From positions 62,001-126,000 of IMG/VR virus record IMGVR_UViG_3300028592_000004: a DNA stretch of 64,000 nucleotides; one strand, given 5' to 3'. Below, piece by piece: positions 6,098-27,515 of the stretch. The notes beneath the pieces are model-generated. The model was not told the DNA's origin. It worked only from the letters and a program-made list of their open reading frames with translations, and did not search any database. Numbering within the stretch: position 1 is the stretch's first letter; every line of letters starts with the position of its first letter. A program made the position numbers and the translations under genes.

Positions 6098-6111
6098 GCG
6101 CGTGCTCACAG

Positions 6112-6144
6112 AAAAGAAGCCCGGACCACAAGGATCCGGGCTTC
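6112..6144 (-). terminator. intrinsic terminator-like hairpin after the SSB-like gene
   Basis: Minus strand GAAGCCCGGA-9nt-TCCGGGCTTC followed by TTTT. Confidence 0.75.
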
Positions 6145-7758: not shown

Positions 7759-7839
7759 TTAGAGGGTCCTTCTGAGTGGTGCCAGCAAAGAAATGCCAGC
7801 AGGAAAGGTACTGGATTGAGGGTATTTTCTCAACGCCAG

Positions 7840-9057: not shown

Positions 9058-12000
9058 TCACTTCGCTTTCGGACAGAACTTATCCGGAATGCCCAGAGAC
9101 CGGACCTGGTCCTGGGTGAGCTCCTCACCCCAGTGCGTCATAATCTCGGCATCAAAGCCGAAATGGTAGGGCTTGGCGATCTCAATGTCGTCTCCGTGCA
9201 GCGTCTTCGGCCACACGTCAACGCCATAGACCAAGCAGGCCGGCAGAACCTCCTCAATCAACCACGGCAACGCCTTCGGGCTCAACTCGAACATCAGGGC
9301 GTCGTGGATCTGCAGCACCAGATGGAACCACTTCTTCGGACGCGACCCGTACTTTTCCCGGTACGCCAGCAAGTTATGGATGCCGATCGAAATCGCGTCC
9401 GCCACCGTCGACTGAATCGGGAAGTTGCAAGCCTGACGCTCCTGCTCAGCCAACTTTGCGCGATCGTCTGTGATCGCGAACCGCCGGTGTCGCATGAACG
9501 GATTGCAGATCCATCCCGGCTCGCTCACGCTGAACTTGCATTCCTCCAGGTACGGATAGGTCTCGGGGTAGAGGGTGAAGTAACCGTCGATCAGGCCCTG
9601 GGCCTCCTCGACTGTCAGCTCCGTCCCTTCTTCCTTCGACTTCCGCGCAATGGCGTCCGGACCAGACTGGTACGGAACACCGAAGTTCACGGTCTTCGCC
9701 CCGGTTCGCAGGTGGAGCTTGTTGATGCTCTTCAGTCCGCTCTTGTTCGGTGGGCAGTTCAGTTTGAACGCGGCCACAGCCGTTTGGGAGTGAAGATCGA
9801 GGTAGTCCTTGTGGTCCTCTGGCAGCAAGTTCCGCGACACGTCCGAGATCATCCGCGGATCCTGCGAAAGCCATGCCATCACGCACAGCTCCGCCGACTT
9901 CAAGTCGACTTCGACCAGGATCTTTCCGGGCGACGCACAGAGCATGCTCCGAATCGGGAAGGTGTACTTCGGGCCGACGATACGGGCATAGTCGCCCTCT
10001 CGCCGTTTTGAATTCCCGCAGATTGAAATCTTCCCCTCGCGGCGAACCACCAAATACGACGTCGGCACCTCCACGCAGTACACCGGACCCGAAAACGATT
10101 CGACAGTCTTCCTGATCGTCGACGTGAGCGTTGTGTTGCTCTTCATCGCCCGAACCCGATCGCTGTCGGCGTTGACGACGGCCTGCAGATTGTTCAGCGC
10201 GAAGATCGTCTGGACCCAGACCACCTGATCCTCATCAGCGGTGGTAAAGTCCCAATGGCGTCCCTTCCGAAACCAACGCTGGATCAGCTTCGGCAGAGCT
10301 GCAAATACCTCAGCCCGAAGCTGGAACACCCAGGAGCCGAATTCCAAGCCGGTCTTCGCCGCAAGATCACAGAGCCCCGGACTGTCCTCAAACTCGAAGA
10401 TCACCTGACGGTTCTCGCGAGTGAAGCGGTGTCGGAAGCCACTGAGGAAGGACAGGGCGGTGACGAGAGGTGTGATCAGATTGGACGCACAGGGAAGCGA
10501 AATTTTTCCGTTTCCCTTGGCGTCAAACTCCCCATAGCGCAGGAACGCCAGGAGAACGGTCAGAGATTCCGGCGAAAGCTCGACAGCCTCGGCTGGATCG
10601 ACCCCCTTGTACTGACCGCTGTGGAGATGAAGAAACCGCCAGTCTGTAGGGAAGTCCTTTGCTTCCACCTCACGAACACCGCCCTCATCGGTCCGGACAA
10701 GGCACCGGTGATTCGGCGTCACCCGAAGCGAGGTCGATCGAGACTCCAGTCGAACCAGATCGCCACGGTGGCTGAACTTCAGCAGATTCGTCTTGGCGAA
10801 GGAGATCTCACCCGTCTCGGAATCGTACTGAGCCACATGGAACGGTTTGCTCTTCGGCAGGTCGCAGACACGGCGCCAGCCGTCAGGCGTCAGAAACTCC
10901 GTGAAGTCGTCATAGCAGAGGTTCTGTAGATTCGGCCGGCTGGACGACACCCGTCCCGTTTCCACGGGATAGAAGTGCGTTCGCACACGACCGTCTGAGG
11001 CCACCGCAGCGAGCAGACCACCGGGGAAGACTTCGAAGTCGTCTTCGACGATGACCTGGCCCATGTCGTCCGTCTTTGGCGGGCGGAGCACACCCTTGAG
11101 CACCTGCGACACGAATCGGACGTCACGGAGCAAGCCGACCGTACCAGAGGTGTCCTGGTACGAGAGGATCCCCAGAACTTCCTTGTCGGTGCTGGGTGCG
11201 TACTCATGGGTCTTCTTCTGCTTGACAATCTTCTCCCAAGGCTGGGGACGCTTCCCCGCGGCCTTGATCGGAGTGAACTTCAGCGATTTGACCGTGAGCG
11301 GCAGGAACCGTTTTGCACCCTGAGTGCCGTTGTACTCCTCACCAAACAGCAGCTCGCGACACTGTGGCGCCGAGTTCGCATTGAACTCGTCGTATCTCAC
11401 CTTGTTCCGAAGCTCCTGCAGTTTGATGTCCTTCGCCTCCATGAAGATCTTCGTCAGGTAGCTGCCTCGCTCGCGGTCGACGTTCAGCCCACGCATCTCC
11501 ATCTCCAGGTAACCCGGGGAGGACATCATCGTGTGCAGGAACGCCTGACGAGAGCTACGACCGTACCGATCCTTGTCGAGCATGCCGGGCTTCTTGCCGC
11601 GGCCGTTGTACGCGCTGAACAGCCGACGTGTCCCGTCAGCGTCGTACATGCCGTAGGGATGAAGAATCCAGTTCGGACACTCGCCATATCCCTCCATGTT
11701 CTTCGCGGTCAGGTTATGCTTCTTGCAGAACCACTCCTTCCACTTCTGCAGAGCGTGGTCATACCGCGGCGTACCGACGTGCCGGACACACAGCGTCTCC
11801 AGCTTGAACTCGGCCGTCTCGCAGTGCGCATGCGCTGCAGCTCCTGTGTCGAAACCGCCGGACCACTTCGTCTGCTCTCCGCGCTCTTCGTCCGTGGCAT
11901 CATCATCAATCAGGTCGACCGCGAACTCGTCGCGAATGTCGATCCCGATGCTGAGGAGCCACGGAATGTCGGCACGGAGGAAGTGGCCGATGATCCGGAC

Positions 12001-13146
12001 CTTCCGCTTCTTCGTCGATTTCAGCAGACGATTGAGGTGATAGACAGCACGCGACAGCCCAGGCCGAAACGCGGGAACGCCACCCTGACTATGCAGGACC
12101 ACACAGACCGCCGACTTCGGCTTGTGGGAGAACTGGATGGTACGCAGGTAGGCTCCGGCGTCCTGGGGTCTCTCTCCGTGCCACTCGGCGTCGATTGCGA
12201 TGTTGAGCGACTCAGGATCCGGGTCGTTGATGATCTCGTCGACGATTGCTTCCAGATGGCGCTCCTTGAAGCACACAACGTGGCGAATGTCGTCTTCGAC
12301 GCGACCAGCGTACTTGCCGTTGACCAGGCCCCAGAACTGAGCCAAACCGTCGCGATGGTTTTCGTACTGCTCCGGTTGATGGAACACCGCAGACGGATGC
12401 GTAACGACCATCACCTTGGCCGTGTGGTATTTCGGCTCTTCGCCTTCCTGGTGCAGCGGGATGTTGTAGTCGGCGGTCATGCCGAACATCGTCCCAACGG
12501 CACCCGTCTTCCCGAGGAGCAGCTTGCCGGCCTCCGAACCGAAGCACAGGATGAACTTCGGCAGGATCAGCCGCATCTCCATTTCCAGGAGAGGCCGACA
12601 GTTCTTGACCCAATCCGTGGCCAAACCATCCGACGCCGGGTCGAGCTTCATGTGGTGGCAGATGTTGGTGACGTACCAGTTCTGCCAGTCCTCCGGCGGG
12701 ATCTGCACTTCGTCCAGAGCCCGATAGAGGTCAGACGCAGCCTGCCCAACGAAGTTCCGAAACTTGTCCACCTCGTCGATGCCGGGATGCTTGCCGATCA
12801 CCATCACGTCCGCCGGCCGCGGGCCATCCGGGTTTTCTTGTCCCCAGATATGGCCCGCGACGAACGGGACGTCTTTCACTGTCCGGGTCTTCTTGACCAC
12901 GATGTCCAGACAGAACTCGGGGTCGTACAAAGCTCGCCGGTACAGGTACTCCAGCCACTTGCCGTTTTCAACGACACGCTTCTTGTCGGACTTCCCATCC
13001 ACCTTGAGGGGAGCATCCCCGAGCAACTCTGCCGCACGAACAAAGTCCGGACCAGGCAGAGGCATCCCAGGCGCCGTGAACGGCACAATGGGGAACTCCT
13101 CCTCATCCATGAAGGGGAGGTCATTCTTGTCTGCTTTGGCAATCAT
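9058..13146 (-). CDS. polA: family A DNA polymerase with N-terminal UDG-like domain, 3'-5' exonuclease and an intein (SPO1-type architecture)
   Basis: UDG-like VMVIGKHPG..E...FVG and HPSAV; Exo IDAEW and YGMYDA; GRVSSSRPNLQN; motif A VDLKSAEL, motif B RTGAKTVNFGVPY, motif C LQIHDAL. Confidence 0.92.
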   Translation of the reverse strand: MIAKADKNDLPFMDEEEFPIVPFTAPGMPLPGPDFVRAAELLGDAPLKVDGKSDKKRVVENGKWLEYLYRRALYDPEFCLDIVVKKTRTVKDVPFVAGHIWGQENPDGPRPADVMVIGKHPGIDEVDKFRNFVGQAASDLYRALDEVQIPPEDWQNWYVTNICHHMKLDPASDGLATDWVKNCRPLLEMEMRLILPKFILCFGSEAGKLLLGKTGAVGTMFGMTADYNIPLHQEGEEPKYHTAKVMVVTHPSAVFHQPEQYENHRDGLAQFWGLVNGKYAGRVEDDIRHVVCFKERHLEAIVDEIINDPDPESLNIAIDAEWHGERPQDAGAYLRTIQFSHKPKSAVCVVLHSQGGVPAFRPGLSRAVYHLNRLLKSTKKRKVRIIGHFLRADIPWLLSIGIDIRDEFAVDLIDDDATDEERGEQTKWSGGFDTGAAAHAHCETAEFKLETLCVRHVGTPRYDHALQKWKEWFCKKHNLTAKNMEGYGECPNWILHPYGMYDADGTRRLFSAYNGRGKKPGMLDKDRYGRSSRQAFLHTMMSSPGYLEMEMRGLNVDRERGSYLTKIFMEAKDIKLQELRNKVRYDEFNANSAPQCRELLFGEEYNGTQGAKRFLPLTVKSLKFTPIKAAGKRPQPWEKIVKQKKTHEYAPSTDKEVLGILSYQDTSGTVGLLRDVRFVSQVLKGVLRPPKTDDMGQVIVEDDFEVFPGGLLAAVASDGRVRTHFYPVETGRVSSSRPNLQNLCYDDFTEFLTPDGWRRVCDLPKSKPFHVAQYDSETGEISFAKTNLLKFSHRGDLVRLESRSTSLRVTPNHRCLVRTDEGGVREVEAKDFPTDWRFLHLHSGQYKGVDPAEAVELSPESLTVLLAFLRYGEFDAKGNGKISLPCASNLITPLVTALSFLSGFRHRFTRENRQVIFEFEDSPGLCDLAAKTGLEFGSWVFQLRAEVFAALPKLIQRWFRKGRHWDFTTADEDQVVWVQTIFALNNLQAVVNADSDRVRAMKSNTTLTSTIRKTVESFSGPVYCVEVPTSYLVVRREGKISICGNSKRREGDYARIVGPKYTFPIRSMLCASPGKILVEVDLKSAELCVMAWLSQDPRMISDVSRNLLPEDHKDYLDLHSQTAVAAFKLNCPPNKSGLKSINKLHLRTGAKTVNFGVPYQSGPDAIARKSKEEGTELTVEEAQGLIDGYFTLYPETYPYLEECKFSVSEPGWICNPFMRHRRFAITDDRAKLAEQERQACNFPIQSTVADAISIGIHNLLAYREKYGSRPKKWFHLVLQIHDALMFELSPKALPWLIEEVLPACLVYGVDVWPKTLHGDDIEIAKPYHFGFDAEIMTHWGEELTQDQVRSLGIPDKFCPKAK
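10012..10917 (-). mobile_element. intein (~302 aa) in DNA polymerase with probably degenerate LAGLIDADG core
   Basis: Starts CYDDFTEFLTPDGW directly after PNLQNL; ends VYCVEVPTSYLVVRREGKISICGN followed by Ser. Confidence 0.9.
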
Positions 13147-15982: not shown

Positions 15983-16754
15983 AGCGCTTAGCTCCTTGCT
16001 GCAAGTTGCGTCGTGCAGCGTCGCGAAGGACCTTCGGAATCAAGTCGCCCCAGATCTGGTCGTACTGATCCCGCAGTGGTGTGTATTCGAGCAGAGCCGC
16101 GTTCTGAAACTGGGCCGCGATCTTGGCGTAGTTGCCAGCGTAGGCCATGCAGTATCGGAACAGCGGAGACAGCTCAATGCGGATGTCGAGCAGGGCGCGG
16201 ATCGCAGCCTGTTCTTCATCCATGTGATGATGCAGCGTGTTGAGCGAGAACCGCTGCCGAAGCAAGCGGTCGCACATCTCCAGCTTGCGCTGAAGCTCGT
16301 CCGGCACCCGACGCATCTCGTCTTCGTAGAGACCGAGCGCCTGAGCCGACATCAGATGGTTGACCTGAGGCGGCGTCGGTGAACGCCACTTCCGGAAAAT
16401 GCACTGCATGTATGGCAGCGGCTCGATCTGCCGATCCAGGAAAAAGTCCGCCAGCCGCAACATGGGCGACGGGACGTGGACCCTTCGATCAGAGATGTAG
16501 CCACCGTAGAGTTGAAGCTCCGTCCCCTTCTGGCCGTACGTGGATTCCTTGCCCGTCCGCGCGTAGTAAAACTCCCGGACCATCGAAGCGTACAGCCTCT
16601 GGAGCTGGACCACGAACGGATGCGACGTTCCGTCATCGTATTCATCGGACGAAGAGGAGTTTTTGACGGCCCGTGAGGTTCGGCCACCGCTGCTCGTATC
16701 CCTTCTTCCGGTAGATCCTCTTCCGCGTTTCGCCGGCACGTTTGAACCCCTCAT
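15969..16754 (-). CDS. hypothetical protein (start uncertain)
   Basis: Open frame between the two helicase genes; helicase-loader role possible from position only. Confidence 0.55.
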   Translation of the reverse strand: MRGSNVPAKRGRGSTGRRDTSSGGRTSRAVKNSSSSDEYDDGTSHPFVVQLQRLYASMVREFYYARTGKESTYGQKGTELQLYGGYISDRRVHVPSPMLRLADFFLDRQIEPLPYMQCIFRKWRSPTPPQVNHLMSAQALGLYEDEMRRVPDELQRKLEMCDRLLRQRFSLNTLHHHMDEEQAAIRALLDIRIELSPLFRYCMAYAGNYAKIAAQFQNAALLEYTPLRDQYDQIWGDLIPKVLRDAARRNLQQGAKRYGGN

Positions 16755-18189
16755 CCCAGAGATCGACAAAGTCGTCCAGTTCCCCAATCTGCTTTCCACT
16801 GTCCGGGTCGAGTCGATCGACACGGCCAGGCAACTGTTCGTCGTAGATCTCGCTTCCATTTCGAGCGTCAGCTCGACTGATCCTTGCCAGCTGCTCAAAG
16901 CTCACACCCTGAGACCAGCAGTTGGTCGAGATAACCTTCTTGAGCGTCCCGCGACGGAAGTCCTTGTACATCTCCTCGCGGTCGACTTCGGTCAGCTTGA
17001 CGTAGTCCTCCGGCAGGAGGCCCATCTTGTAGAACTTCTCCTGCTTCTTCCGATCGAGCGTGGAGTACATCAAGCTGTAGTGCGGCAGCATCTCGTGCAG
17101 GTGCAGGACATGCTCCAGAGCGTCGCACATGATGAGATGTTGCGACTTGGCCGGGATGCTTCGGGCGACGTTTGCAATCGCCTGATTGCGGAACTCATTC
17201 CGCCAGATCCCGAACCGTTTGGCCTCAATGCCCATCATCCGAGACCCGTCGCTGCCAACGATCGGGTTGTACCTCGAATGGACGTTGTGCCAGTTGACGA
17301 CAATCGGCAAGACGAGGCCCATGTCGCGGGCCTCAGCGTAGCGGATCGAGAAGATCTGCCGGCCGAATATCGCTTCGATGCGGATGTCCGTGCCGTCCTT
17401 ACGGCCCTCCGGAGTGGCCGTGAAGCCGAAGCATCGAGCCGAGCCTGTAATCTGAGCAAGGGACTCCGCGTGCTTGTCAGACACCAGAGCATGCACCTCG
17501 TCCACGATCAGGATGTCGATCTCCTCCTCATCCAGATGGTGCATCGAGTCTGCGCTGCAGACTGTGACGCGTCCCCGGCTCTTCTCGGTGCCGGTGATCA
17601 TCCCGACCGATGGCAGATACTCACACAGGTGGGAGTACGTCTTTCGAACGTTCGCCAGCCCGGGAATAACGATCGCGATCTTGGCCCAGCGGTACGCCAG
17701 GCAGAACGCCGCGAAACCATAGCTCTTACCGAAACCAGCCGCAGCGACAAGCACGCCGCACTCGTTGTCGATCATCGCCGCCAGCATCTCATCCTGGCGT
17801 TCCTTGAATTCGAAGTTCGCGACACAGTGCTCCAGATCCACCTCGAACGCACGCTTCCGCGGTGAGGGTGGAGTCGAGTCCTGGTAGTCGAGTTCGAAGC
17901 CGTGCCGCTCAATCTCTTCGAAGATGCGGAAGCGGAAGCCAGCAGGACAAAGGAGCCGATCGTTCCGCCCGAAGCGGTACATGTCGACCGCCTCAGTTCG
18001 AACCGGAACGTAGTCCCCTGCCTCTGTGTAGGCCTCTTTCCCATGCAGCGTCTGCACGTAGGTGTAGACGAGCTGGCGCCGCAGCGAAGCGTTCAGATCG
18101 GCCGGCAGGACGCCGCCGTTGTACGACACGTCGAGAGCGTTTTTGCGCCGGCGGACACAAATGGTCTTTGGCAAATTTCCGGTCTCCAT
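16642..18189 (-). CDS. superfamily 2 helicase (UvsW/Rad25-like)
   Basis: AAAGFGKS, IVDEVH, FTATPEGR, STNCWSQGV, QLPGRVDR. Confidence 0.85.
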   Translation of the reverse strand: METGNLPKTICVRRRKNALDVSYNGGVLPADLNASLRRQLVYTYVQTLHGKEAYTEAGDYVPVRTEAVDMYRFGRNDRLLCPAGFRFRIFEEIERHGFELDYQDSTPPSPRKRAFEVDLEHCVANFEFKERQDEMLAAMIDNECGVLVAAAGFGKSYGFAAFCLAYRWAKIAIVIPGLANVRKTYSHLCEYLPSVGMITGTEKSRGRVTVCSADSMHHLDEEEIDILIVDEVHALVSDKHAESLAQITGSARCFGFTATPEGRKDGTDIRIEAIFGRQIFSIRYAEARDMGLVLPIVVNWHNVHSRYNPIVGSDGSRMMGIEAKRFGIWRNEFRNQAIANVARSIPAKSQHLIMCDALEHVLHLHEMLPHYSLMYSTLDRKKQEKFYKMGLLPEDYVKLTEVDREEMYKDFRRGTLKKVISTNCWSQGVSFEQLARISRADARNGSEIYDEQLPGRVDRLDPDSGKQIGELDDFVDLWDEGFKRAGETRKRIYRKKGYEQRWPNLTGRQKLLFVR

Positions 18190-18268
18190 AGATGGAGACG
18201 CGCTTGCCTACGCCCGGTACAGAGTCTAAAGTACCCGCGCACACAGCACGTCCCCACGTCGCTGAAAC

Positions 18269-18299
18269 AGGCCCGGCAAGTTGGTCGCTTGCCGGGCCT
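18269..18299. terminator. perfect 12-bp hairpin downstream of the RAMP gene (terminator or processing site)
   Basis: AGGCCCGGCAAG-ttggtcg-CTTGCCGGGCCT; only short T-tracts on either side. Confidence 0.6.
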
Positions 18300-18302
18300 T
18301 CT

Positions 18303-18794
18303 TTATTGCTCTGCTTGTTCTTCAGCCACTGCTGACAGGTCTATCACCTCGAAGTTTCCGAACTGGCCAGGCTTGTAGGGGCTGATCCCCCTGTACTTGC
18401 CCGCCGTGTTGAGCAGGTCTCGGAGCTGAGCATCCGAGAGTTCCCGCGGTGCCATCAGCCCTATCTCGATCACTGCATCAATCGCGAAAGCCTCGTGGAT
18501 CGCGTACCGCTTCCTCCTCCCGGGTTCGGGGGCCTCTCGCAGGTAACGCCGTAGCTCGCTGACTGGCCCAGATACGACAGGGTCCCAGGACACGTTGCGA
18601 ACGACCGCCTGCGGCAGATTCAATCCTTTGGCTGCGAACAGTGTGATGGCACGCCACCAGGTAGGTGCGAAGAGCACCCGACCCTTGGAATCCCTGGGCA
18701 TACGGAAGACCACTTGCGTACCCTGTTCGGAGCGCACGTCTCCGTAACATGGCTGCAAAAATCGCAGTCTAGCCTTCAACTCCCGCATGACCAT
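18303..18794 (-). CDS. stand-alone RAMP (Cas7/Csm3-like) RNA-binding protein
   Basis: Beta1 RLRFLQPCYG, RDSKGRVLFAPTWW (cf. RD..G.P.IPGSS), HEAF..DAVIEI, and C-terminal G-rich loop AGKYRGISPYKPGQFGNFEV. Confidence 0.65.
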   Translation of the reverse strand: MVMRELKARLRFLQPCYGDVRSEQGTQVVFRMPRDSKGRVLFAPTWWRAITLFAAKGLNLPQAVVRNVSWDPVVSGPVSELRRYLREAPEPGRRKRYAIHEAFAIDAVIEIGLMAPRELSDAQLRDLLNTAGKYRGISPYKPGQFGNFEVIDLSAVAEEQAEQ

Positions 18795-18806
18795 CCATCC
18801 GTGGAT
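18793..18806 (-). promoter_or_regulatory. CsrA-type binding hairpin at RAMP gene start
   Basis: AUCCA-CGGA-UGGAU overlapping the start at 18794; another ACGGA 9 nt upstream. Confidence 0.6.
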
Positions 18807-18878
18807 TCCGTCGAGGAGCCGATGTTAAGCGCCGGCTCGATTCTGGTCAAACACACCTTCACCAACCGTCGCAGCGGC

Positions 18879-19820
18879 CTATGAATGGTGGGTTTCCGGC
18901 TTCCAGGACTCAACATGCTGTGTGAACGCTTTACACACCAGCGGATCGTGGAAGAAGTAGTCCGGCACAAACAGCCGATCCCCCTTCCGTTCCACAACCG
19001 CGTCAGTCCACGTCCGGCACAGGAAGCTCATGAGGAGCTTGCAGACCCGCAGCTCGGCATGCGTCTTGTTCAGCCGGCACTGCCGCCAGAGGAAGTTCCG
19101 GGGATCCTCCAGCTGCGCGGCGGTCGGACCCGGCTGCCACTGCCAGGAGTTCAACACCAGCTTGGCTCGATCATTCGGCCCGTACGGTCGCTTCGCTCTC
19201 CCTAGCACCCACGCCATCGTCTGAGGGTTCATCCCCATGTACTGCATGACGCAGGACAGACTGTCAGGCTTGTCCCGCTTCACGTACCACCGGGGATCCC
19301 GGATCGCAGCCACGATACGAGCCAGAGCCGCTGTATCGTGATACCGGAAGAAGCTCCACATCTTCGCCGCCGGATGCGTCCAGAGCATGTTCCGGAGCTC
19401 ACTCTCCGGACGCTTCTGGGCGATCGCATCGGCGAGCGCGTAGGGGACATATTCGACAGCGGACATGACGTGCCACCCTCCCATCGAAGAGGGGAGGCCT
19501 TCGAGCTCACGAGCACGAAGAATAGCAATCCGCGGGTCGTCCATCTCAGCCGCGGTCAAAGACAGTCGTGGCGTGCACAGCTCAATAGGAGCCTGCGTCG
19601 CCACGAACAGTCTGGCAATCAGGACCGAGTTCGATGCAGAGGCAATCACCCGAAACCGCTTGCCACGGCTAATCGTGGGCGTCTCCATGAGAGCGTCCAC
19701 ATTCTCAGCGGCAAGGACCGGCGGGTGTTCGCCGTTCGCGCACCAAACTTGGCCCGTGGGGCACACATGCAGCTTCACGCTCGCGACGTCCGTCACTGCA
19801 CGGCTCGACTTAATCGACAT
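18879..19820 (-). CDS. IS110/Nop-domain-derived protein (Tas-like) with eroded RuvC-like N-domain
   Basis: ARIVAAIRDPRWY...CVMQYMGMNP (cf. AA.I.AEIGD..RF...L.SY.GL.P) and HAELRVCKLLMSFLCRTW (cf. HA..R..K.FL..LW); no DEDD acids and no catalytic SG. Confidence 0.55.
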   Translation of the reverse strand: MSIKSSRAVTDVASVKLHVCPTGQVWCANGEHPPVLAAENVDALMETPTISRGKRFRVIASASNSVLIARLFVATQAPIELCTPRLSLTAAEMDDPRIAILRARELEGLPSSMGGWHVMSAVEYVPYALADAIAQKRPESELRNMLWTHPAAKMWSFFRYHDTAALARIVAAIRDPRWYVKRDKPDSLSCVMQYMGMNPQTMAWVLGRAKRPYGPNDRAKLVLNSWQWQPGPTAAQLEDPRNFLWRQCRLNKTHAELRVCKLLMSFLCRTWTDAVVERKGDRLFVPDYFFHDPLVCKAFTQHVESWKPETHHS

Positions 19821-22062
19821 CAACTTTCCTTCTCCGACGACGTTCTTCTTTGATTCGTGCGACGGGGTGCAGGTCAATCATGTGGTCGAACATAGCCGAA
19901 AGACGCGGTTCGTGCGTCACGATCAAGCACTGAAGGCCTGTGGAAGCGGAAAGCTCCCTCAGACGCTCCACTGTCGGTGCCAGAGCCAGCACGTTCTCCT
20001 CGTCGAGGAACTGCGTGGGCTCATCCAGCGTCAACAGACCCAGGTCCTGGGTGAACAACGTGATGCGGGCTACACGAACCAGAATTCCGAGCAGGACTTT
20101 CTGGCCACCTGAGATTCGATCTGCAACTTGCTCCCGGCCGTCAAGGAACCGAGCAGCAAAGGTGAGTCCATCCGCTTGCCCGATCCTGAAATTCGCATCG
20201 ATCCGATGCAGAAGGTCGTTCGTGTCCTCCGCAATCATCGACAAGTAATCGGCAGCCACGATCTTCGGCAGTTCGAGCATCACCTCCCTCACGGAAGAGA
20301 TGTCCCGCTTCAACCGGATCAGGGCATTGCCGTTCTCCGCCCGAACCTTTGCAGATTCCAGGCGGGCCGTCAGAGTCTTCCGCGTCTTGTCCAGGGACGT
20401 GATCTCCCCTTCCAGACCAGATCGCTCCAGCAGTCGCTTCTTCTTTTCTTCGATCTTCTCCCGAGCTTCAGTCAGCTTCTTGGGATCGACCGCCTTTGGC
20501 TGACCGGCCAGCAACTTGTGCCTCCGGTCCTTCAAGGACTTGAGCGTCGCCTTTGCAGCGGTCACGTCCTTGTCGTGAGTCTGAACGTCCTTCTCGGCCT
20601 CCTGAATTTCGAGGAACACGTCCGAGTGATCCTCCTTCTTCTGAGCGAGAGTCTCTGTCAGCTCTTCATAGGTTGAGACCAGCTCTTCGAGCGTCTCCTT
20701 GTCGCCCTTCGGCGCGGCGGGGACGACAGTCTCTTCCAGTTGATCCTTCGTTCGATGGAAGTCCCTCTGGAGCTCCGCCAGCGCACGGTGCCGCTCAGCG
20801 AAGGCCTGATCGTGCTTACGAGATTTGGCCAGGACCTGCTCCGCAGTGCCGAGCTTGAAAACGAGTTCCTCAACACGATCGTCAGCAGAGTCTGCAATCT
20901 CATAGATTTTCGCCAGCAGCCCAGTCGGATTCCGGACCCGGACATACTGATTGACCAGATCCGAAATATACCTCGTGCTGGCGTATTCCCTGTCGAGCGT
21001 TTCTGTGTAGCTGTCGCGCTCTTCCTCAGGAACATAGTTTTTCGGGCGTTCGGGATCGCCAGCCTCTCGCAGAGTCTTGAGCTGCGCCTGCAACTCCTTG
21101 AGGCGCTTGGCAACCTTCTCTTTGGCCTCAGCAGCACGCTGGTAGGCGGAGAAGTTCTTGAGCACAGCCCGGGCGTCATCAACGTCCGCCTGCGACTCAG
21201 CGAGACCCTGCTCAGTGGCCGTGATCTCGTTATCGATGGCACGGATCTTAGTCCGAAGCTGATCCACCTCATCGGCTGCAGAGGTGTCCTCTTCCAGCTC
21301 CTGGACCTTCTTCTCCTGGGCTGCAATGTCGCGTAGCAGCTGGTCGGCATCGGCCTGAATCCGATCGTACGACTCCTGCTGCTTGATCAACGTCTGAAGC
21401 GGGTCCGCTTCGACGTCGTACCCTTCGACATCCCGATACCGCTTGAGGCTTGAGCCGGCCTTACGAGCGGACGCCTCGTTCTCCGCGAGGGAGCCCTCAA
21501 TCGTTCGGATCTCCACATCGGGATCTCCGATCTCAATTGAGGGGAGCCAGTCAGCAATCGCTTTTGCGACGAGCTCAGCCGCCTTAGTGCCGAACATCGA
21601 CTGGAAGGACTGAAGCCGAACCGCGGGCGTCTGATCGATGAAGTCGTACAGCCGACCCTGCCCGATAAAGCAGTTGTCGGAGATGAGCCGCATGTCGGCT
21701 CCGAGAATACGACCGATCTCAGCCGAGACTTCCGTCTCGCCGAACAGGGGCTTGCCGCCGTTGACCGTCATCTGGGTCTTGCACTTCTGCAAGCCCCGGA
21801 CAATCTCCAGGCGGTCGCCGGCGTGGGTCATGTTCAGAACACCGTAGGACTTCGCACCCTCGGGCGCGAGCGTACAGATGTTCGACTCCTTGACACCGGC
21901 GTTGGTGGTGAAGTCGCCAGTGATCAGCCACTGGACGATCTTCAGGATGCTGCTCTTCCCTGAGCCGTTTGGGCCGACGATTCCATTGATCCCCGGCTTG
22001 AAGTCCACCGACAGCTTGCGGTGGTAGCAGACTTCGAAAGCATCCAGGTGCTCAAGATTCAT
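19810..22062 (-). CDS. sbcC: SbcC/Rad50-like SMC ATPase
   Basis: GPNGSGKSS, long coiled coil, ISGGQK, LDEPTQFLD, IVTHE. Confidence 0.9.
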   Translation of the reverse strand: MNLEHLDAFEVCYHRKLSVDFKPGINGIVGPNGSGKSSILKIVQWLITGDFTTNAGVKESNICTLAPEGAKSYGVLNMTHAGDRLEIVRGLQKCKTQMTVNGGKPLFGETEVSAEIGRILGADMRLISDNCFIGQGRLYDFIDQTPAVRLQSFQSMFGTKAAELVAKAIADWLPSIEIGDPDVEIRTIEGSLAENEASARKAGSSLKRYRDVEGYDVEADPLQTLIKQQESYDRIQADADQLLRDIAAQEKKVQELEEDTSAADEVDQLRTKIRAIDNEITATEQGLAESQADVDDARAVLKNFSAYQRAAEAKEKVAKRLKELQAQLKTLREAGDPERPKNYVPEEERDSYTETLDREYASTRYISDLVNQYVRVRNPTGLLAKIYEIADSADDRVEELVFKLGTAEQVLAKSRKHDQAFAERHRALAELQRDFHRTKDQLEETVVPAAPKGDKETLEELVSTYEELTETLAQKKEDHSDVFLEIQEAEKDVQTHDKDVTAAKATLKSLKDRRHKLLAGQPKAVDPKKLTEAREKIEEKKKRLLERSGLEGEITSLDKTRKTLTARLESAKVRAENGNALIRLKRDISSVREVMLELPKIVAADYLSMIAEDTNDLLHRIDANFRIGQADGLTFAARFLDGREQVADRISGGQKVLLGILVRVARITLFTQDLGLLTLDEPTQFLDEENVLALAPTVERLRELSASTGLQCLIVTHEPRLSAMFDHMIDLHPVARIKEERRRRRKVDVD

Positions 22063-23206
22063 CGTCTTCCTCTTCCTCCTCATCGACCGTAGTGATCACC
22101 TCGGTCTGGATTTTCTTCAGCTCATCGAGCACGGCGTTCTTGCTTTCTGCAATCTCCAGCAAGCGCCGGCACAGCCTGTACTCATCGGATCCCTTCGGCG
22201 TCGCTCGCTCAAGGAACGAGAGCAGACTGGTGCGTTGACCGACGCGGTCCTTCGTCTTCTCGATCCGAACGACCTTTGAACCTGTCGGCCGCGGAGAGAG
22301 GAACACGTGGGCCTGATTGTCGAACGCCGTCATCAGGCGGTCGTACACGTCAGGCAGGTTATCGGGATAGTCCACGTGGATGATCGGCGTACGGACCACC
22401 TCCGGAATATCGTCGTCGTAGAAGTTGCCCTCCTTCGCGTCCTCGCACAGATCGTCCAGTCCACCGATGTCATCGAGGCTGAAGGTGTGGAAGGGGCGAG
22501 TGATGAGCTTCACCGACTTGTAGTCGACGAGCTTGTTCCTGTTGAACTCCAGCTCCCAGAAGGCCTTTTCGGGCGGCTCGTCGATCGACTGCATGCACGT
22601 CGATCCTGGAGAGAAGACACGCAACGTCGAGCCGTCCTCGCGCTTCAGCTTCACCGTCTTGTGCTGATGGAGATCCCCAGTCAGAACGACCGGAGCAGGG
22701 CAGTCTTCGAGTTGACCTTCGACGCCGGGCAGGGTGCCCATGAAGTCAGGTCCACCCCAAACCTGGTGACAGACGAACAGACCGATCTGGAGGTCAGCAG
22801 CCTCTTCAAGCTCGGTGAGAAGCTGGTGAGACGCCTGCCAGTCCAGGCCGTACATCTTCAGGCCACCGATAGTGACGAGCCTGCGATGAAAGTGACGCGG
22901 CCAGGGATGAGCATCGAACCGGGCGCGAACCGCGTTCCGCTCGTGCTGACCCTGAATGAAGTAGAACGGAATCCCAGCTTCCTGCAGCCTGTCGAACTGC
23001 TCGTGAGCCTGGACCTGAATGCTGGGAGTCGGATCCACCGTATCGATCAGGTCACCGGCGCCGATGACGGCGTCGACCTTCTCTTCAACGGCCCGATCCA
23101 CGATTTGCTTCAGAGAGAAAACTGCATCGCCAGCCAGATCCGGGTGACGACGCCAGGCACGCTCCTGAAGGTGCCAGTCTGAGGTGGACAGGAGACGAAT
23201 CGACAC
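22052..23206 (-). CDS. sbcD: SbcD/Mre11-like metallophosphoesterase nuclease
   Basis: SDWHL, GAGDLID, QGQHE, TGDLHQH; coupled to sbcC. Confidence 0.9.
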   Translation of the reverse strand: MSIRLLSTSDWHLQERAWRRHPDLAGDAVFSLKQIVDRAVEEKVDAVIGAGDLIDTVDPTPSIQVQAHEQFDRLQEAGIPFYFIQGQHERNAVRARFDAHPWPRHFHRRLVTIGGLKMYGLDWQASHQLLTELEEAADLQIGLFVCHQVWGGPDFMGTLPGVEGQLEDCPAPVVLTGDLHQHKTVKLKREDGSTLRVFSPGSTCMQSIDEPPEKAFWELEFNRNKLVDYKSVKLITRPFHTFSLDDIGGLDDLCEDAKEGNFYDDDIPEVVRTPIIHVDYPDNLPDVYDRLMTAFDNQAHVFLSPRPTGSKVVRIEKTKDRVGQRTSLLSFLERATPKGSDEYRLCRRLLEIAESKNAVLDELKKIQTEVITTVDEEEEEDDES

Positions 23207-23481
23207 TAGCTCCCTTTCAGAGTGATGACGGGACCAATAAGACCAAGATCGCGCTCGGCAATCTTCTGACCGATCGAGTTCTCGAACTCAACCGAGGCCG
23301 CAGCCAAAGACCTGGCGAGCCGAACACTGGCAAGCCCGCCCATCTTTTCAAGATACGACCGAACGCAGTGAAAGCGATCGCAGATCGGTCGTTCCTTCTC
23401 AACAACAGTCGTGTAGACCGTCAGAAACCTGCGAATGTCGGACTGCCTGGTAGTGCTCACGGATGGTGACCTCATCGACAC
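23206..23481 (-). CDS. hypothetical protein
   Basis: 91-aa ORF filling the gap, stop abuts sbcD start. Confidence 0.5.
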   Translation of the reverse strand: MSMRSPSVSTTRQSDIRRFLTVYTTVVEKERPICDRFHCVRSYLEKMGGLASVRLARSLAAASVEFENSIGQKIAERDLGLIGPVITLKGS

Positions 23482-24238
23482 CGGAACAACCGCGAATGGA
23501 GTGATAGATCTTGAAGTTCGGATGGAGGATCATCGGCGCGGGGGACCAACGCTGATGCTCCTTCGGATGATTCGCATAGACCGGAGCCTCGGGGTTCTCC
23601 ATCGATCCAGCGAACTGCGTCTGAAATCCAAGGGCCTGGCAAAGCCAGGAGATGTAGACATCAGGCCAGAGATCCCACGTCTCGTACTTCTCCGGCGCCA
23701 GGAAGCGTCGCTCAACAAGGCGGTCTACGAACTTCCGCGACATCCAGTGAGATGCGAAGAAGATCGTTTCTGCGGTCGGAGCAAAGTCCGCGGGCAGCTC
23801 GGTACAGAGGTCGCGAACGAACGCACCTCGGGACGGCCACCACATCTGATAGTTGACGCGATCCCGGACCCCGAGCAGATCGACATCGCACTTCTCCATC
23901 TCCAGGCGAGCCCAGATATCAAGATGCAGACCGATGGGCAGAGCATCATCGTCGAGGACGAGAACGCGATCGAAGGTGATGCCCTGATCGATCGCCCACT
24001 GGATGCCCTGGTAGGTGATGAAGCCAGACAGGTTCAGCTTCGGCATCAGCTTGTTGGGAATGACAGCGTACTCACGCGGGCCGGGCTCCGGCCCGAATGG
24101 CGAGTCGATGGCGCCGCCGCCGTCGACGATCACCATCAGGAATGACTCGCTGTGAGACCACTCGATCGCCTCGAACTGGTCTGTGGCGATGAACTGGCCC
24201 CGGTTCGTCGCCATCACGACCAAGGTTTTGACGTGCAT
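23399..24238 (-). CDS. GT-A fold glycosyltransferase-like protein
   Basis: LMVIVDGG, RVLVLDDDALP, WPDVYISW; TAATG coupling to upstream gene. Confidence 0.6.
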   Translation of the reverse strand: MHVKTLVVMATNRGQFIATDQFEAIEWSHSESFLMVIVDGGGAIDSPFGPEPGPREYAVIPNKLMPKLNLSGFITYQGIQWAIDQGITFDRVLVLDDDALPIGLHLDIWARLEMEKCDVDLLGVRDRVNYQMWWPSRGAFVRDLCTELPADFAPTAETIFFASHWMSRKFVDRLVERRFLAPEKYETWDLWPDVYISWLCQALGFQTQFAGSMENPEAPVYANHPKEHQRWSPAPMILHPNFKIYHSIRGCSGVDEVTIREHYQAVRHSQVSDGLHDCC

Positions 24239-25296
24239 TATCGGCTTTCGATCAGCCGGACCCACTGTTGAAGGTAAAGGCCCAGCTTAGGAACGTAGTT
24301 GCGGGTGTCTTCGTAGACAGAGTCGGCGGGTACGTCCTTGACCGCCACGGGATTCATGAGGAACTCACCGAGCTCCATCGCGCACGAAGAGAACGTGTTC
24401 GACGTCAGCTTCGCGTTGTCGATGATATCGACCAGGAACTCGTTGGCCAGGACACCCGGCGCCTCGCGGACCAGGTTGATCATGGGCTTGCTGGCGCGGG
24501 AGTGGTGGATGACCGGGTTACCCACGGCAATCGACCATCCAAGCTGGCGACAGATCCGTTGCAGAATCCAGCCGCCCCAGATGTCGTCGAATCGGAAGAA
24601 GGGCGTCCCGTTCCCCATCTTGGGGAAGTACGAGGCCGGCGCCGCTTCGGTGTTGATGGCAAAGTTCATCCCGCAGAGCGGAGTGAGCTGCCGCGGATTG
24701 AGCAGCTGGGTCATGACACGCGGGCAGCGATAGCCACCCGGCGTCTCCATACCGGACCGTTCTTTCGTCGGAGCCAGGGAGTGGATGGCGTCAAAGTCCG
24801 GGATCCCATCCCACAGGCCCACACTGGCTGCGACCTGATTCAAGTCTTTCTGCCGCTCATAAGGCAGGCCACGAACATGCAGGTGGCCAAGCGGAGACGA
24901 GAAGCGGGGGAAACCGCTGAGCTGGGCCAGGTGAGCCCGCGCCACGAAATCCGGATTCCGTTCGTCGACCGGGAAACAGTCGTCGTCCAGAATCAGGACC
25001 CGCTTCTCGTTGCTCCGCACAGCCTTCAGCAGGGCTGCCATTTTGATGCCGGGATCGCCGATCGAGATACACTCGGCGTCCGGTCCCCAGCTCTGAATCT
25101 CGTCGACCGTGATGATCTCGCAGTCGATGAAGGAGTAACGTTCGACCAACTCCCTCGCCTTGGGCAGCGTGGCGGTGTCCGCGTACACCAGATAGAAGGT
25201 GCCGAAAGGCCAACTTCGTTCTGAGCTGTCGCACCACTTCTCCAGAAACCACTCCAGATGCTTGATGCGGTTCGAGGCCATCGCCAGAGCAATCAT
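24238..25296 (-). CDS. reversibly glycosylated polypeptide / UDP-arabinopyranose mutase-like protein (GT75)
   Basis: ILDDDCFP, VRGLPY, VGLWDGIPDFDA, PLCGMNFA, RFDDIWGGW, HHSRAS, NLVREAPG follow the RGP/UAM motif series. Confidence 0.8.
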   Translation of the reverse strand: MIALAMASNRIKHLEWFLEKWCDSSERSWPFGTFYLVYADTATLPKARELVERYSFIDCEIITVDEIQSWGPDAECISIGDPGIKMAALLKAVRSNEKRVLILDDDCFPVDERNPDFVARAHLAQLSGFPRFSSPLGHLHVRGLPYERQKDLNQVAASVGLWDGIPDFDAIHSLAPTKERSGMETPGGYRCPRVMTQLLNPRQLTPLCGMNFAINTEAAPASYFPKMGNGTPFFRFDDIWGGWILQRICRQLGWSIAVGNPVIHHSRASKPMINLVREAPGVLANEFLVDIIDNAKLTSNTFSSCAMELGEFLMNPVAVKDVPADSVYEDTRNYVPKLGLYLQQWVRLIESR

Positions 25297-25305
25297 TGCT
25301 TCGCC

Positions 25306-26094
25306 TTACAGTACATCCCGTACTGACTGTGGGATCGGTTCGAGGGGCTGCATTGCCCCGATGTTGTCCACGTTTGTCCGGAACCACTTCTCGAACTCTT
25401 CGTCCGAACAGCGGTTCTGGAAGCCGGCACCTGCGGCAATGTCTGCCTTGCTCCACTTCCGATTCCGGAAGCGTTCCAGGCGACGACGGGCGACAGCATA
25501 ATCCAGCTTGTGCAGGTGGACAAGAAGGAGGTTCGGGTCGACCGAAATCGTCTTGTGCGGGACGAGGATCGACTCGTGGAAACCCTTGCACCACATCATC
25601 GGTACACGGCTCAAAAGCGGCTTGCTGTACTGCGTGGTCGGATACCACCAACCGCGGTGTTCCAGCATCCGACTCTGGATCAGAGCCTGATCCTCTTCAC
25701 CGATCTGATGCACAACCTCAAAGCCAGTGCATCGCACGACAGGCTGAACCATGTCGGCCGCGTACTCGACCAGATTCGTGTAGTGCGAGGCCGGATCAGT
25801 CAGGACGAACTCGTCGACCTCGACGAAGAGGACCGCCTCATAGCTGTTCAGCAGGAAGTGCTGGAAGTCCTGAACCGTCTTCAGCATCCAGTCGTGATCG
25901 ACCTCGTCGTTGAAGACCGACACGACACGGATATCGCGTGCAACCGCATCCTCCAGCGCCAGGTTGTCGTCCGAGTGGTTGTCCAGAATGAACAGGTCCG
26001 AACCATACCCATGATTGATGTAGTGGTCGCACCAGACCGGCAGAAACTCCGGCTCATCCTTGACGATCGTGAAGATGGCTAGGGGTTTTCGCAT
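25306..26094 (-). CDS. GT2-like glycosyltransferase (Glyco_tranf_2_4 type)
   Basis: IVKDEPEFLPVWCDHY, ILDNHSDD, VLFVEVDEF, LLLVHL. Confidence 0.75.
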   Translation of the reverse strand: MRKPLAIFTIVKDEPEFLPVWCDHYINHGYGSDLFILDNHSDDNLALEDAVARDIRVVSVFNDEVDHDWMLKTVQDFQHFLLNSYEAVLFVEVDEFVLTDPASHYTNLVEYAADMVQPVVRCTGFEVVHQIGEEDQALIQSRMLEHRGWWYPTTQYSKPLLSRVPMMWCKGFHESILVPHKTISVDPNLLLVHLHKLDYAVARRRLERFRNRKWSKADIAAGAGFQNRCSDEEFEKWFRTNVDNIGAMQPLEPIPQSVRDVL

Positions 26095-27515
26095 CCAAGG
26101 GCTTTCAGAATCTGCGTCGTGCTGTACTCTGGCAGACGCGGGACGTAGTAGGTCTCCTTGACCAGGTCACTGCCCACGGCTCCGCCGGGCAGGTCGATGT
26201 CATCCGCGACGCGGACAAGCACGTCAGGACGGATCAAGCGAATCAGCTCGCTCGGCGTCTGCTCGTTGAAGACGACGACGAGATCGACGCAGCCCAAGGC
26301 AGCGACCATCTCAGCGCGATCGCCCTGCTTTGTCTTCGGACGATTCGGCCCCTTGCTGGCCGACACGCTGCTGTCGGTGTTCACCGCGCCGATCAAACGG
26401 GTGCCGCGGCGGCGGGCCTCCACGAGAACGTGGACGTGCCCGGGATGCAGCATGTCAAAGCACCCGTTGCTGAAGACGACCTTCTCGCCGGCAGCCTGCC
26501 ACTGAGCACAGGCCAGGGCCGCAACCTCTGCACTGACGATCTTGAAGTACGGATGAATCGCGGCAGCCTTCGCCAGCCGCAGTTCGAGGGGATCGACGAC
26601 AGACGTCCCGGGCTTCGTCACAACCGTACCTGCCGCCAGGTTCGCAATCTGAATCGCCAGCGGAAGGTTGTCGTGAGAGATAAGCTCGACCGCCAGTGTT
26701 GCCGTAAACGTGTCGCCGGCACCGCAGACGTCATAGACATGCGAAACCCGCGTCGGAAATCGACTGACGCCAGCTTGATCGAACAGAATCGCTCCGTTCC
26801 GGCCGTTGGTGCAGACAACGTTGCTGACGATTCCGTCGAGCCCAAGGTCGACCAGGCTCTCGGAACCATTCTCAATCTCATCAACCTCCAGACCGGAAAT
26901 CTGAGCCAACTCAGTTTCATTCGGAGTGATGACGAACGCGCCACGGAGGTACGAAAAATGGACCGGCCGCGGATCGACGATGACCTTGGCGCCGGCAGCG
27001 TTCGCGTACTTGATCACTTCGGAGAGCAGGCTGTGCCTCGTACCGAGGGCACCTTTCGCGTAGTCGGAGATCAGGACGATCTTGTACGAATTCGCGTTCA
27101 GGACTGCCTTCAAGCGAGTCAGGTAGTCCGCGGCGCTGGCCGGTGCGTGCGGCTGATCGTTGTCCTCCCGGGTCAGCAGACGGGTGCCACTCCAGATCCG
27201 ACGCTTAACGGTCGGGCCAGCGAAGCGACGCTCGCTGCCCACCGAGTAGATGTCGATGGCGTGATGGCCGCACAGTGCGACGAGGTCCGAACGATGCGTC
27301 TCGTCGGACATCACAGTGAACAGGTCGCAACGGCCATGCAGGGCGGCGACATTGGCAGCGACGTTTGCAGCTCCGCCGAGGGAGCGAGTCACTGACTGGC
27401 GCTGGTAGACCGGAATCGGGGCCTCGGCCGCGATCCGAGTGGGCTCGACGAAGACTGCCTCGTCGATCATGACATCGCCGATCACGAGAATCTGCGATGG
27501 ATCCTGCTGGGGCAT
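26079..27515 (-). CDS. hldE: bifunctional heptose-7-phosphate kinase / heptose-1-phosphate adenylyltransferase
   Basis: VIGDVMID...EAPIPV, GGAANVA, VYDVCGAGDTF (PfkB) plus VFSNGCFDMLHPGH, NTDSSV..SKGPNRP. Confidence 0.9.
   Translation of the reverse strand: MPQQDPSQILVIGDVMIDEAVFVEPTRIAAEAPIPVYQRQSVTRSLGGAANVAANVAALHGRCDLFTVMSDETHRSDLVALCGHHAIDIYSVGSERRFAGPTVKRRIWSGTRLLTREDNDQPHAPASAADYLTRLKAVLNANSYKIVLISDYAKGALGTRHSLLSEVIKYANAAGAKVIVDPRPVHFSYLRGAFVITPNETELAQISGLEVDEIENGSESLVDLGLDGIVSNVVCTNGRNGAILFDQAGVSRFPTRVSHVYDVCGAGDTFTATLAVELISHDNLPLAIQIANLAAGTVVTKPGTSVVDPLELRLAKAAAIHPYFKIVSAEVAALACAQWQAAGEKVVFSNGCFDMLHPGHVHVLVEARRRGTRLIGAVNTDSSVSASKGPNRPKTKQGDRAEMVAALGCVDLVVVFNEQTPSELIRLIRPDVLVRVADDIDLPGGAVGSDLVKETYYVPRLPEYSTTQILKALGCENP

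Follow-up and report, generated by a model that had tools for sequence, protein, structure and literature searches.

Two adjacent genes, designated gpA and gpB, lie between an SbcC-like gene and a helicase gene in a 64-kb stretch (hereafter, the window) of the 229-kb genome of an uncultivated phage, IMGVR_UViG_3300028592_000004, where it occupies positions 62001-126000 of the 229,210-bp contig. They are best explained as conserved, vertically inherited members of a replication–recombination block present in a large clade of phages, all uncultivated and about 200 kb in size. An initial annotation, made from the letters of this DNA, had read the pair as a two-protein guide-RNA module in which a Nop/IS110-like protein (gpA) and a RAMP (gpB) would act with RNAs encoded in the two gaps flanking gpB. 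We hold, with middling confidence, that gpA and gpB instead bind the nucleic acid intermediates that arise in replication or recombination, and that they are not the proteins of a self-sufficient guide-RNA cassette. What makes the locus unusual is its proteins; its RNA-level signals are ordinary, apart from one plausible small antisense RNA. In this region every gene lies on the minus strand, in the following order.

22052-23206, minus strand: SbcD-like gene (Pfam Metallophos; synteny)
19810-22083, minus strand: SbcC-like gene (Pfam SMC_N/AAA_23, PHROG SbcC; synteny)
18879-19820, minus strand: gpA, 313 amino acids (aa), ATG at 19820, stop codon at 18879-18881
18795-18878: gpA–gpB gap (upstream gap), 84 nucleotides (nt)
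18303-18794, minus strand: gpB, 163 aa
18190-18302: gpB–helicase gap (downstream gap), 113 nt
16642-18189, minus strand: superfamily 2 (SF2; ResIII/DEAD) helicase, ATG at 18189 (Pfam, PHROGs, synteny)
Following the SF2 helicase, minus strand: a 309-aa open reading frame (ORF), a DnaB-like helicase, a 371-aa protein and PolA (Pfam, PHROGs, synteny)

The gap and gene coordinates of the initial annotation were exact, and its placement of the pair between SbcCD and an SF2 helicase was confirmed; gpA overlaps the SbcC-like gene at its upstream end. The two gaps are not, as had been stated, the only ones in the block from 7.8 to 27.7 kb, which also contains 192 nt upstream of SbcD (23207-23398) and 81 nt at 7759-7839.

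Conservation of the block was examined by scanning IMG/VR with the gpB alignment, which gave 58 loci, many of them on contigs of 150–225 kb (loci are cited below by L number). The order SbcD–SbcC–gpA–gpB–helicase–DnaB–(371-aa protein)–PolA was found in all gpB loci with enough flanking sequence, and the same order from SbcD to PolA was found in five metagenome contigs and in the one gpB match that a search of 185,579 species genomes returned, a phage-like contig of a metagenome-assembled genome (MAG). In all, about 60 viral contigs show this arrangement. Conservation of gene order had been proposed as a check on the module, and in this respect the proposal stood: gpA was directly upstream of gpB, or parted from it by inserted DNA alone, in all informative gpB loci save L010 and L016, the only two in which gpB has no gpA neighbour. 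In L010 (6370-7753) and L016, gpA is absent and two or three unrelated small ORFs lie between SbcD and SbcC. The reverse situation, gpA without gpB, occurred in at least 16 loci or contigs representing about 8 distinct lineages (L147/148, L149/150, the P0120 contig, L204 and 9 of the 53 IMG/VR gpA loci), each with the order SbcC–gpA–helicase, and the syntenic position of gpA was fixed in more than 100 loci. On this distribution gpA is the core gene that accompanies SbcCD and the helicase, whereas gpB was added within a single sub-lineage; the two genes are not an obligate pair. The gpA–gpB junction is also a hotspot for insertion, with spacings of 1.1–3.3 kb in L030, L050 and L057, 709 nt in L005 and 517 nt in L008, some of the inserts carrying ORFs.

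The gaps themselves did not show the conservation expected of them. The gpA–gpB gap was 15 nt or shorter in 45 of 60 loci, and in most relatives gpB abuts or overlaps the helicase gene. Since the gaps are missing in most relatives, neither encodes anything generally needed by gpA or gpB.

The structure of gpB was predicted with AlphaFold2 from an alignment of 34 sequences, giving a mean predicted local distance difference test score (pLDDT) of 93.9. A Foldseek search of the PDB with this model gave 105 matches at E <= 1e-3 (best E 1e-6), and the top 50 were all Cas7-type RAMPs of type III, III-E and VII systems (Csm3, Cmr4, type VII Cas7, Cas7-11 domains and Cmr1), with template modelling (TM) scores of 0.54–0.66. 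The closest named structures in the ESM Atlas were RAMPs (PF03787, TM 0.68) and Csm4; by features, the 100 closest ESM Atlas clusters were all unnamed, and viral among those listed. The family has an invariant motif, G-x-Y-x-G-x-S-P-(8 residues)-G-x-F (G132, Y134, G136, S138, P139, G146 and F148), in a glycine-rich loop (residues about 132–148) situated between helix 2 (residues 121–134) and the last strand (residues 148–155), as RAMPs have it. Two beta-hairpins are inserted in the model, at residues 20–31 and 97–116, either of which might be the thumb that in RAMPs enters the guide–target duplex. The likeness to Cas7 takes in the RRM core, the inserted beta-hairpins and a G-rich loop at the same topological place, but gpB is smaller, has no conserved catalytic Asp and shows no similarity at the level of hidden Markov models (HMMs). 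None of the 34 family members matched a Pfam or NCBIfam RAMP model at E <= 1. Both gpB and gpA, as single proteins and as family alignments, gave nothing above threshold against Pfam, PHROGs and NCBIfam, and profile searches of PDB sequences with the two gave no match. The predicted structure strongly supports gpB being a minimal single-RRM RAMP of the Cas7/Vipr-like kind, a call made in the initial annotation for a protein that Pfam, PHROGs and NCBIfam do not see. Unlike in CRISPR-Cas loci, no CRISPR array, Cas10, Cas5, Cas11 or Cas6 was present in the window or related loci, where the neighbours are SbcCD, helicases and PolA.

By sequence comparison, gpB looks like a core gene of its sub-lineage that evolves slowly and is inherited vertically. 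Its mean pairwise identity was 0.52, compared with 0.52 for the helicase, 0.53 for PolA, 0.40 for SbcC and 0.33 for DnaB. Distances between gpB proteins followed those of the helicase, SbcC and gpA (Spearman 0.76–0.88; label-permutation p 0.001), values that shared relatedness alone would yield and that show only that there is no hint of independent horizontal movement.

It was only in 2026 that stand-alone RAMPs of phages were described, under the name VIPR, which is defined by pentamer-repeat guide RNAs. Vipr proteins are phage-encoded minimal RAMPs that polymerise on vrRNAs of 9–16 YNNGG repeats located beside the gene; a vap accessory gene usually adjoins Vipr, accessory genes that act on DNA, nucleases and helicases among them, accompany the RAMP in these loci, and some of the loci have just one vrRNA gene (bioRxiv 10.64898/2026.04.26.720920, 10.64898/2026.04.26.720927). 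The residues of SUSP1 Vipr that read GGY are H17, R138, D177, W178 and R179, with D177 essential in an alanine scan (bioRxiv 10.64898/2026.04.26.720920, 10.64898/2026.04.26.720927). Like Vipr, gpB is a stand-alone phage RAMP with a single RRM, of about 18–20 kDa, outside any CRISPR locus and beside a DNA-acting accessory gene. When a Vipr HMM was run on all window ORFs, gpB was the sole match (E 0.002), and hhalign aligned the gpB profile to a 13-sequence Vipr profile with a probability of 87 and E 4e-6, over the last 44 columns only. The C-terminal helix, the G-loop (same length and pattern) and the last strand align, and aromatic and basic residues following the G-loop glycine are kept; the N-terminal 110 residues, by contrast, do not align. 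In the hhalign alignment of the G-loop, D177 of SUSP1 Vipr corresponds to the invariant P139 of gpB, while W178 (Tyr or Phe at 140) and R179 (Lys or Asn at 141) are partly kept. H17 on strand 1 has no counterpart (Ala or Asp, compared by eye). No aligned position was obtained for R138. The setting differs as well, since gpB lies inside a core replication block and not in a small mobile cassette, and its neighbour is IS110/TasR-like and not a vap of the winged-helix, helix-turn-helix or HNH kind.

Guide arrays were sought with a pentamer-repeat scanner that, on phiSUSP1, returned exactly the four reported arrays around the two-gene locus. Of 80 canonical Vipr loci taken from IMG/VR, 75 proved to have YNNGG arrays no more than 1.5 kb away. 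By contrast, the 64-kb window contained none, and none lay within 1.5 kb of gpB in any of 63 loci; relaxed scans for NNNGG, YNNNG and NNNNG were at or below shuffle level. Nor did the window contain CRISPR-like, interspaced or other tandem arrays outside coding sequence, every repeat family lying in genes (collagen-like or acidic runs); TIGR arrays are weakly conserved and could escape such repeat scans, and a remote one could still exist. Within 10 kb of any gpB gene the sole YNNGG array was that of L051 (2311-2826), which was considered as a guide for gpB and rejected, because the array is part of a distinct cassette that brings a canonical Vipr of its own. This cassette (L051:2247-3897; IMGVR_UViG_3300022752_005685) is a complete canonical VIPR locus comprising tRNA-Gln, six YNNGG units, a 120-aa HNH-like ORF and a 234-aa Vipr homologue, which aligned to SUSP1 Vipr with an hhalign probability of 99.4 and E 8e-22. 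It sits in a variable region, where the close relatives L035 and L047 hold other DNA.

Because arrays are missing, the GGY-reading residues are partly lost and the profile match is C-terminal, gpB lacks the defining features of VIPR yet would share ancestry or design with Vipr. The best reading of these comparisons is that gpB represents an array-less RAMP lineage, distantly related to Vipr and Cas7. It could also be a VIPR-like effector whose array is remote or lacking, guided from elsewhere in the genome, by the small antisense RNA described below or by another transcript, with gpA and the helicase in vap-like roles and with competitor or own phage DNA as the target. The RAMP fold, the Vipr-like G-loop, the HMM match unique to gpB and the precedents of DNA-acting accessory genes and single vrRNAs are consistent with such an effector. 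In addition, L051 shows that the clade can carry VIPR arrays, and 64 of 229 kb were examined. We nevertheless consider it unlikely, given the absence of arrays within 1.5 kb in all 63 loci (and within 10 kb of any but the separate L051 cassette), the replacement of D177 by an invariant Pro, the missing counterpart of H17, and the slow, vertical evolution of gpB within a replication block, which is unlike that of a competition cassette.

For gpA, an AlphaFold2 model was built from an alignment of 43 sequences, and the residue counts given below were taken over 140 family members. The model (pLDDT 91.3) shows an alpha/beta N-domain followed by a helical C-domain. Its two best Foldseek matches in the PDB were the two chains of TIGR-TasR (9mty; probability 0.99, E 0.016, TM 0.38–0.42), aligned over about 311–316 columns, the whole length of the protein; weaker matches were to RNase H-fold proteins (the C-terminal half of UvrC, RuvC and retroviral integrase). 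By language-model features the closest named ESM Atlas clusters were IS110 (Transposase_20, DEDD_Tnp_IS110; score 0.88), which serves as a lead only. Transposase_20 (PF02371) was the sole Pfam family matched by more than one of the 140 members (three members, best E 0.028, below threshold); PF01548 (DEDD_Tnp_IS110) was matched by none of them. With the 140-member profile as query, a word-index search found 35 sequences of the family, all of them without a name or Pfam assignment. The family comprises 1044 clusters at 50% identity, with lengths of about 300–350 aa among those listed. The three lines of evidence are independent and each is weak alone; we accept the architecture but assign gpA to no family. 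Together they give moderate support to an RNase H/RuvC-like N-domain joined to a helical Nop/Transposase_20-like C-domain, as in TIGR-TasR and IS110, and likewise to the earlier Nop/IS110-like call, again for a protein invisible to Pfam, PHROGs and NCBIfam.

To our knowledge, an Asp on strand 1 is required by all RuvC/IS110 enzymes. Strand 1 of gpA has no conserved acidic residue: residue 20 is Asp in 57 of 140 members and residue 22 is Asp or Glu in 67 of 140. At residue 80, 88 of the 140 have Glu and 38 have Gln, and the window protein carries Cys, Thr and Glu at residues 20, 22 and 80. Judged from these alignments, the nuclease site is degenerate, the RuvC catalytic carboxylates not being conserved. 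Other polar residues are near-invariant in the family, namely H117, D/E123, H149, D175 and R177 (within D175-P-R-W), D181 and E295. The window gpA has Lys at 181 and Val at 295, where 80% and 96% of the 140 members have Asp or Glu, and it may be a relaxed or diverged copy relative to the family norm.

The domain order of gpA, RuvC-like then Nop-like, and its whole-length structural match are those of TIGR-TasR (PDB 9mty), and Tas proteins with a predicted inactive RuvC exist (PMC12045711). Unlike TIGR-TasR, gpA has a TM-score of only 0.40 and RuvC acids that are not conserved, and most gpA loci have no adjacent non-coding space for a TIGR array; and whereas TIGR-Tas stands alone, gpA accompanies SbcCD and a helicase as a core gene. 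Archaeal and eukaryotic Nop5 and Nop56/58 of box C/D ribonucleoproteins also combine a dead RuvC-like N-domain with a Nop domain (PMC12045711). This combination of degenerate RuvC-like and Nop-like domains recurs in gpA, but no box C was found in the gaps, neither fibrillarin nor L7Ae was seen as a partner, and the sequences show no similarity. With IS110/IS621, gpA shares the RuvC-like N-domain and a Transposase_20/Nop-related C-domain; it differs in having no DEDD tetrad, no match to Transposase_20 or DEDD_Tnp_IS110 above threshold and no flanking bridge-RNA region. Because gpA overlaps SbcC it has no IS110-style non-coding end, and because its syntenic position is fixed it shows no mobility.

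It is also conceivable that gpA is an active enzyme that processes recombination intermediates jointly with SbcCD, whether as an IS110-type recombinase that has been domesticated, as a junction resolvase or as a nuclease whose active site has moved, and that gpB is an unrelated later insertion. Consistent with this are the IS110/TasR-like architecture, the near-invariant polar residues and the tight coupling of gpA to SbcC and the helicase even where gpB is lacking. Set against it are the missing strand-1 Asp, the lack of any Transposase_20 match above threshold, the departures at residues 181 and 295 in the window protein, and the absence of element ends or any sign of mobility. Overall, we regard an enzymatic gpA as distinctly improbable.

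Both gaps had been described as structured. All of the small hairpins listed for them, the 12-bp GC hairpin and the GGTAC/GTACC arms are present in the sequence, but strong structure is confined to the downstream gap (z -6.6); folding of the upstream gap is at chance level (z +0.66, with 150 of 200 shuffles folding at least as well). The signals assigned to the gaps of the window, and the candidate RNAs of relatives, are as follows.

18822-18850, minus strand: sigma-70-like promoter reading into gpB, TTGACC, 17-nt spacer, TAACAT; match of at least 9/12
18204-18232, plus strand: weak sigma-70-like promoter for the antisense unit, TTGCCT, 17-nt spacer, TAAAGT; 8/12 match
18239-18306, plus strand: candidate antisense RNA of about 68 nt, with a 5' hairpin carrying a CCCC loop, the terminator hairpin, and a U-tail over the gpB stop codon; z -6.4
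18269-18299, plus strand: intrinsic terminator, a GC-rich hairpin of 12–13 bp directly after the gpB stop codon, with a T-tail; the region's top terminator match
L013:10445-10526, L015:3993-4074, L018:10473-10548, L008:10564-10636 and L149:5051-5127, all minus strand, and L204 in the gap 5973-6139: candidate antisense RNAs of 65–85 nt in relatives, each with a sigma-70-like promoter and a terminator

The upstream gap looks like a sigma-70-type promoter for gpB. The promoter match there is one of just two in 20 kb that reach 9/12, and its -10 element is bracketed by the GAGCCG/CGGCTC hairpin. A sense promoter of the same type and position was present in all five relatives with a non-coding gap (L002, L008, L013, L015 and L018), matching at 9–10/12 where scored. 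About 25–45 nt upstream of the -35 element of the gpB promoter, L008, L013 and L018 share a conserved motif resembling GACCACAAAATAYGGGA, in two copies in L008, which could be an operator for a phage regulator; the motif is not present in the window.

The terminator of the downstream gap has a good T-tail on the plus strand, antisense to the genes, and a weak tail on the minus strand. Matching hairpins with T-runs on the antisense side were found in L005, L008, L013, L015, L018, L149 and L204. In the window, the -10 element of the antisense promoter sits in the AT-rich loop of the GGTAC/GTACC palindrome. Antisense promoters matching at 10/12 lie 65–85 nt upstream of the terminator in L008, L013, L015, L018 and the gpB-less L149; the motifs in relatives are TTGACC or TTGACA, a 17-nt spacer, and TATCAT, TACCAT or TACGAT. 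The sole two promoter-like sites of at least 9/12 in 5 kb of L013 flank gpB, and the two flanking gpB in L015 are the best of six. The predicted antisense transcripts consist of a 5' hairpin with a C-rich loop (CCCC, UCCCC, UUCCCC or GCCCCU) followed by the terminator (z -2.8 to -6.4), and this two-hairpin design follows near-consensus antisense promoters in L008, L013, L015 and L018. Similar or weaker antisense units were seen in L005, L183 and the gpB-less L204. In the window, L013, L015 and L018 the C-rich loop could serve as an anti-Shine–Dalgarno seed. When RNAalifold was applied to nine candidate antisense RNAs, the terminator helix alone was recovered; covariation in the 5' hairpin was not demonstrated because the sequences are too divergent for MAFFT alignment.

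At the site of the downstream gap, gpB-less relatives of low GC content have a strong sense promoter for the helicase. This promoter and the plus-strand signals mark the downstream gap as an operon boundary. In this sub-lineage the gap probably carries a small convergent RNA gene that is not tied to gpB. A comparable arrangement is the OOP RNA of phage lambda, a cis-antisense small RNA bounded by a promoter and an intrinsic terminator. The candidate RNA of the window is likewise short and convergent, with its 3' end over the stop codon of the upstream gene; its sequence is unrelated to that of OOP, and its C-rich apical loop suggests a possible further target in trans.

In at least eight lineages, a promoter and a short terminated transcript separate the recombination genes from those for the helicase, DnaB and PolA. 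This arrangement would also suit a replication origin or control region in which the antisense RNA primes synthesis through an R-loop that gpB, gpA and the UvsW-like helicase stabilise or remove. Transcript-primed origins are known in phages, as is removal of R-loops by an SF2 helicase (T4 UvsW). However, no iterons or AT-rich unwinding element were seen, the unit is absent from most of the clade, and cumulative GC skew across the window has no inflection at this position; an origin here is very unlikely.

The gaps are still less convincing as sources of guide RNAs for a gpA–gpB ribonucleoprotein, the reading of the initial annotation. Both folds are known elsewhere for binding guide RNA, and the structured downstream gap probably does specify a small RNA, but on the opposite strand. 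Box C (RUGAUGA) occurs on neither strand of either gap (a single CUGA was found), and no box C/D, bridge-like, TIGR-like or YNNGG features were detected. The upstream gap is an unstructured promoter and the downstream gap a terminator with an antisense unit; most of the clade lacks the gaps, the antisense unit also adjoins gpA where gpB is missing, and in low-GC relatives that have no gpB its place is taken by a plain helicase promoter. We therefore consider guide RNAs in these gaps highly improbable. The Cas7-like fold of this phage protein would also suit a decoy RAMP, an anti-CRISPR protein poisoning the type I or type III complexes of the host. We consider that very improbable, since counter-defence genes usually lie in variable regions with fast turnover, whereas gpB has a core position, is inherited vertically, is conserved to the same degree as the helicase and has no sequence similarity to Cas7 families in Pfam or NCBIfam.

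In the reading we prefer, gpA would be the older, core member, a RuvC-like and Nop-like protein with a degenerate nuclease site, which would bind structured or branched nucleic acid together with SbcCD and the helicase. gpB would have been inserted between gpA and the helicase in a sub-lineage, and would use its RRM face and G-loop to bind a single strand, most likely either RNA or, in a hybrid, the RNA strand. It probably acts as an oligomer, and having its own promoter in this sub-lineage would accord with a demand for more copies of the protein. The gaps, finally, would hold transcription signals of this sub-lineage only, with the gpB promoter upstream and, at the helicase operon boundary downstream, the terminator and convergent antisense unit.

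Of this reading, the folds, the gene order, the promoter and terminator motifs and the lack of arrays have been shown, whereas binding, oligomerisation and a part in replication are inferred. Several points weigh against this arrangement. We infer the replication role from gene neighbourhood alone, and we know of no RAMPs with a conserved G-loop other than guide-RNA binders (Cas5–7 and Vipr). RNA partners could be encoded elsewhere in the 229-kb genome, as 64 kb were examined. The match of gpA to TasR is weak in TM-score (0.40) and has no support above threshold at the sequence level, and the label of non-catalytic is provisional for gpA because its near-invariant polar residues could form an active site. 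For the antisense unit, the promoter in the window matches at just 8/12 positions.

A bolder version, which we rate as distinctly improbable, has a gpB RAMP filament and a Nop-type gpA with a dead RuvC domain loading on a transcript, be it the convergent small RNA, some primer-like RNA or a remote guide, forming or reading R-loops, and directing SbcCD, the SF2 helicase or replication initiation to sites in DNA. If the two proteins did form such an RNA-dependent replisome machine, gpB would be a RAMP lineage with a non-defence function, bearing on the roles of RAMPs before CRISPR and VIPR, and the locus would be the first case of the RAMP and Nop/IS110 RNA-binding lineages working side by side. 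More generally, RNA binding by gpB would imply either a new use of RAMPs, in replication or recombination as opposed to interference, or a system of the VIPR kind whose guides are remote or unrecognised, and either outcome informs the debate on the origin of CRISPR RAMPs. The gpA family, for its part, would be a sizeable, unexplored and unannotated branch of the Nop/IS110 superfamily, with about a thousand clusters at 50% identity.

The rest of the window was also surveyed. It had no DNA or protein BLAST match among 50,697 GenBank phage records. No tRNA was found, and no Rfam family matched at gathering or E-value thresholds, the lone SorX match, on the terminator, being at chance level. For the 309-aa ORF between the two helicases, the ESM Atlas gave no informative match. 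PolA (9058-13146, minus strand) is a protein of 1362 aa in which the polymerase is fused to a 3'-5' exonuclease and an N-terminal domain of the UDG (uracil-DNA glycosylase) superfamily; a weak Intein_splicing match at residues 762–833 suggests an intein or intein remnant. In L025, L029, L033, L050 and L058 the SF2 helicase gene is about 380 codons longer (about 890 aa), and the helicase of L149 (5188-7938; 916 aa) has a Pfam Intein_splicing match, pointing to inteins in this helicase in part of the clade.

Just upstream of the SbcCD block, the window encodes an RGP-like glycosyltransferase, a GT2 glycosyltransferase and a PfkB kinase–cytidylyltransferase fusion (HldE-like) at 24238-27515 (minus strand). 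Genes for sugar activation and transfer are kept upstream of SbcD in the distant relatives L149 and L204, and those of the window are candidates for glycosylation of DNA or the virion. Repeats with a 9-nt period at 56070-56525 and 63009-63830 (minus strand) encode collagen-like Gly-X-Y tracts in two large ORFs, which are probably fibre or decoration proteins. Three further genes, at 6200-6580, 28100-28620 and 40260-40470 (minus strand), contain long Asp/Glu-rich repeat tracts, and the one at 28.1–28.6 kb includes about two copies of a 114-nt unit.

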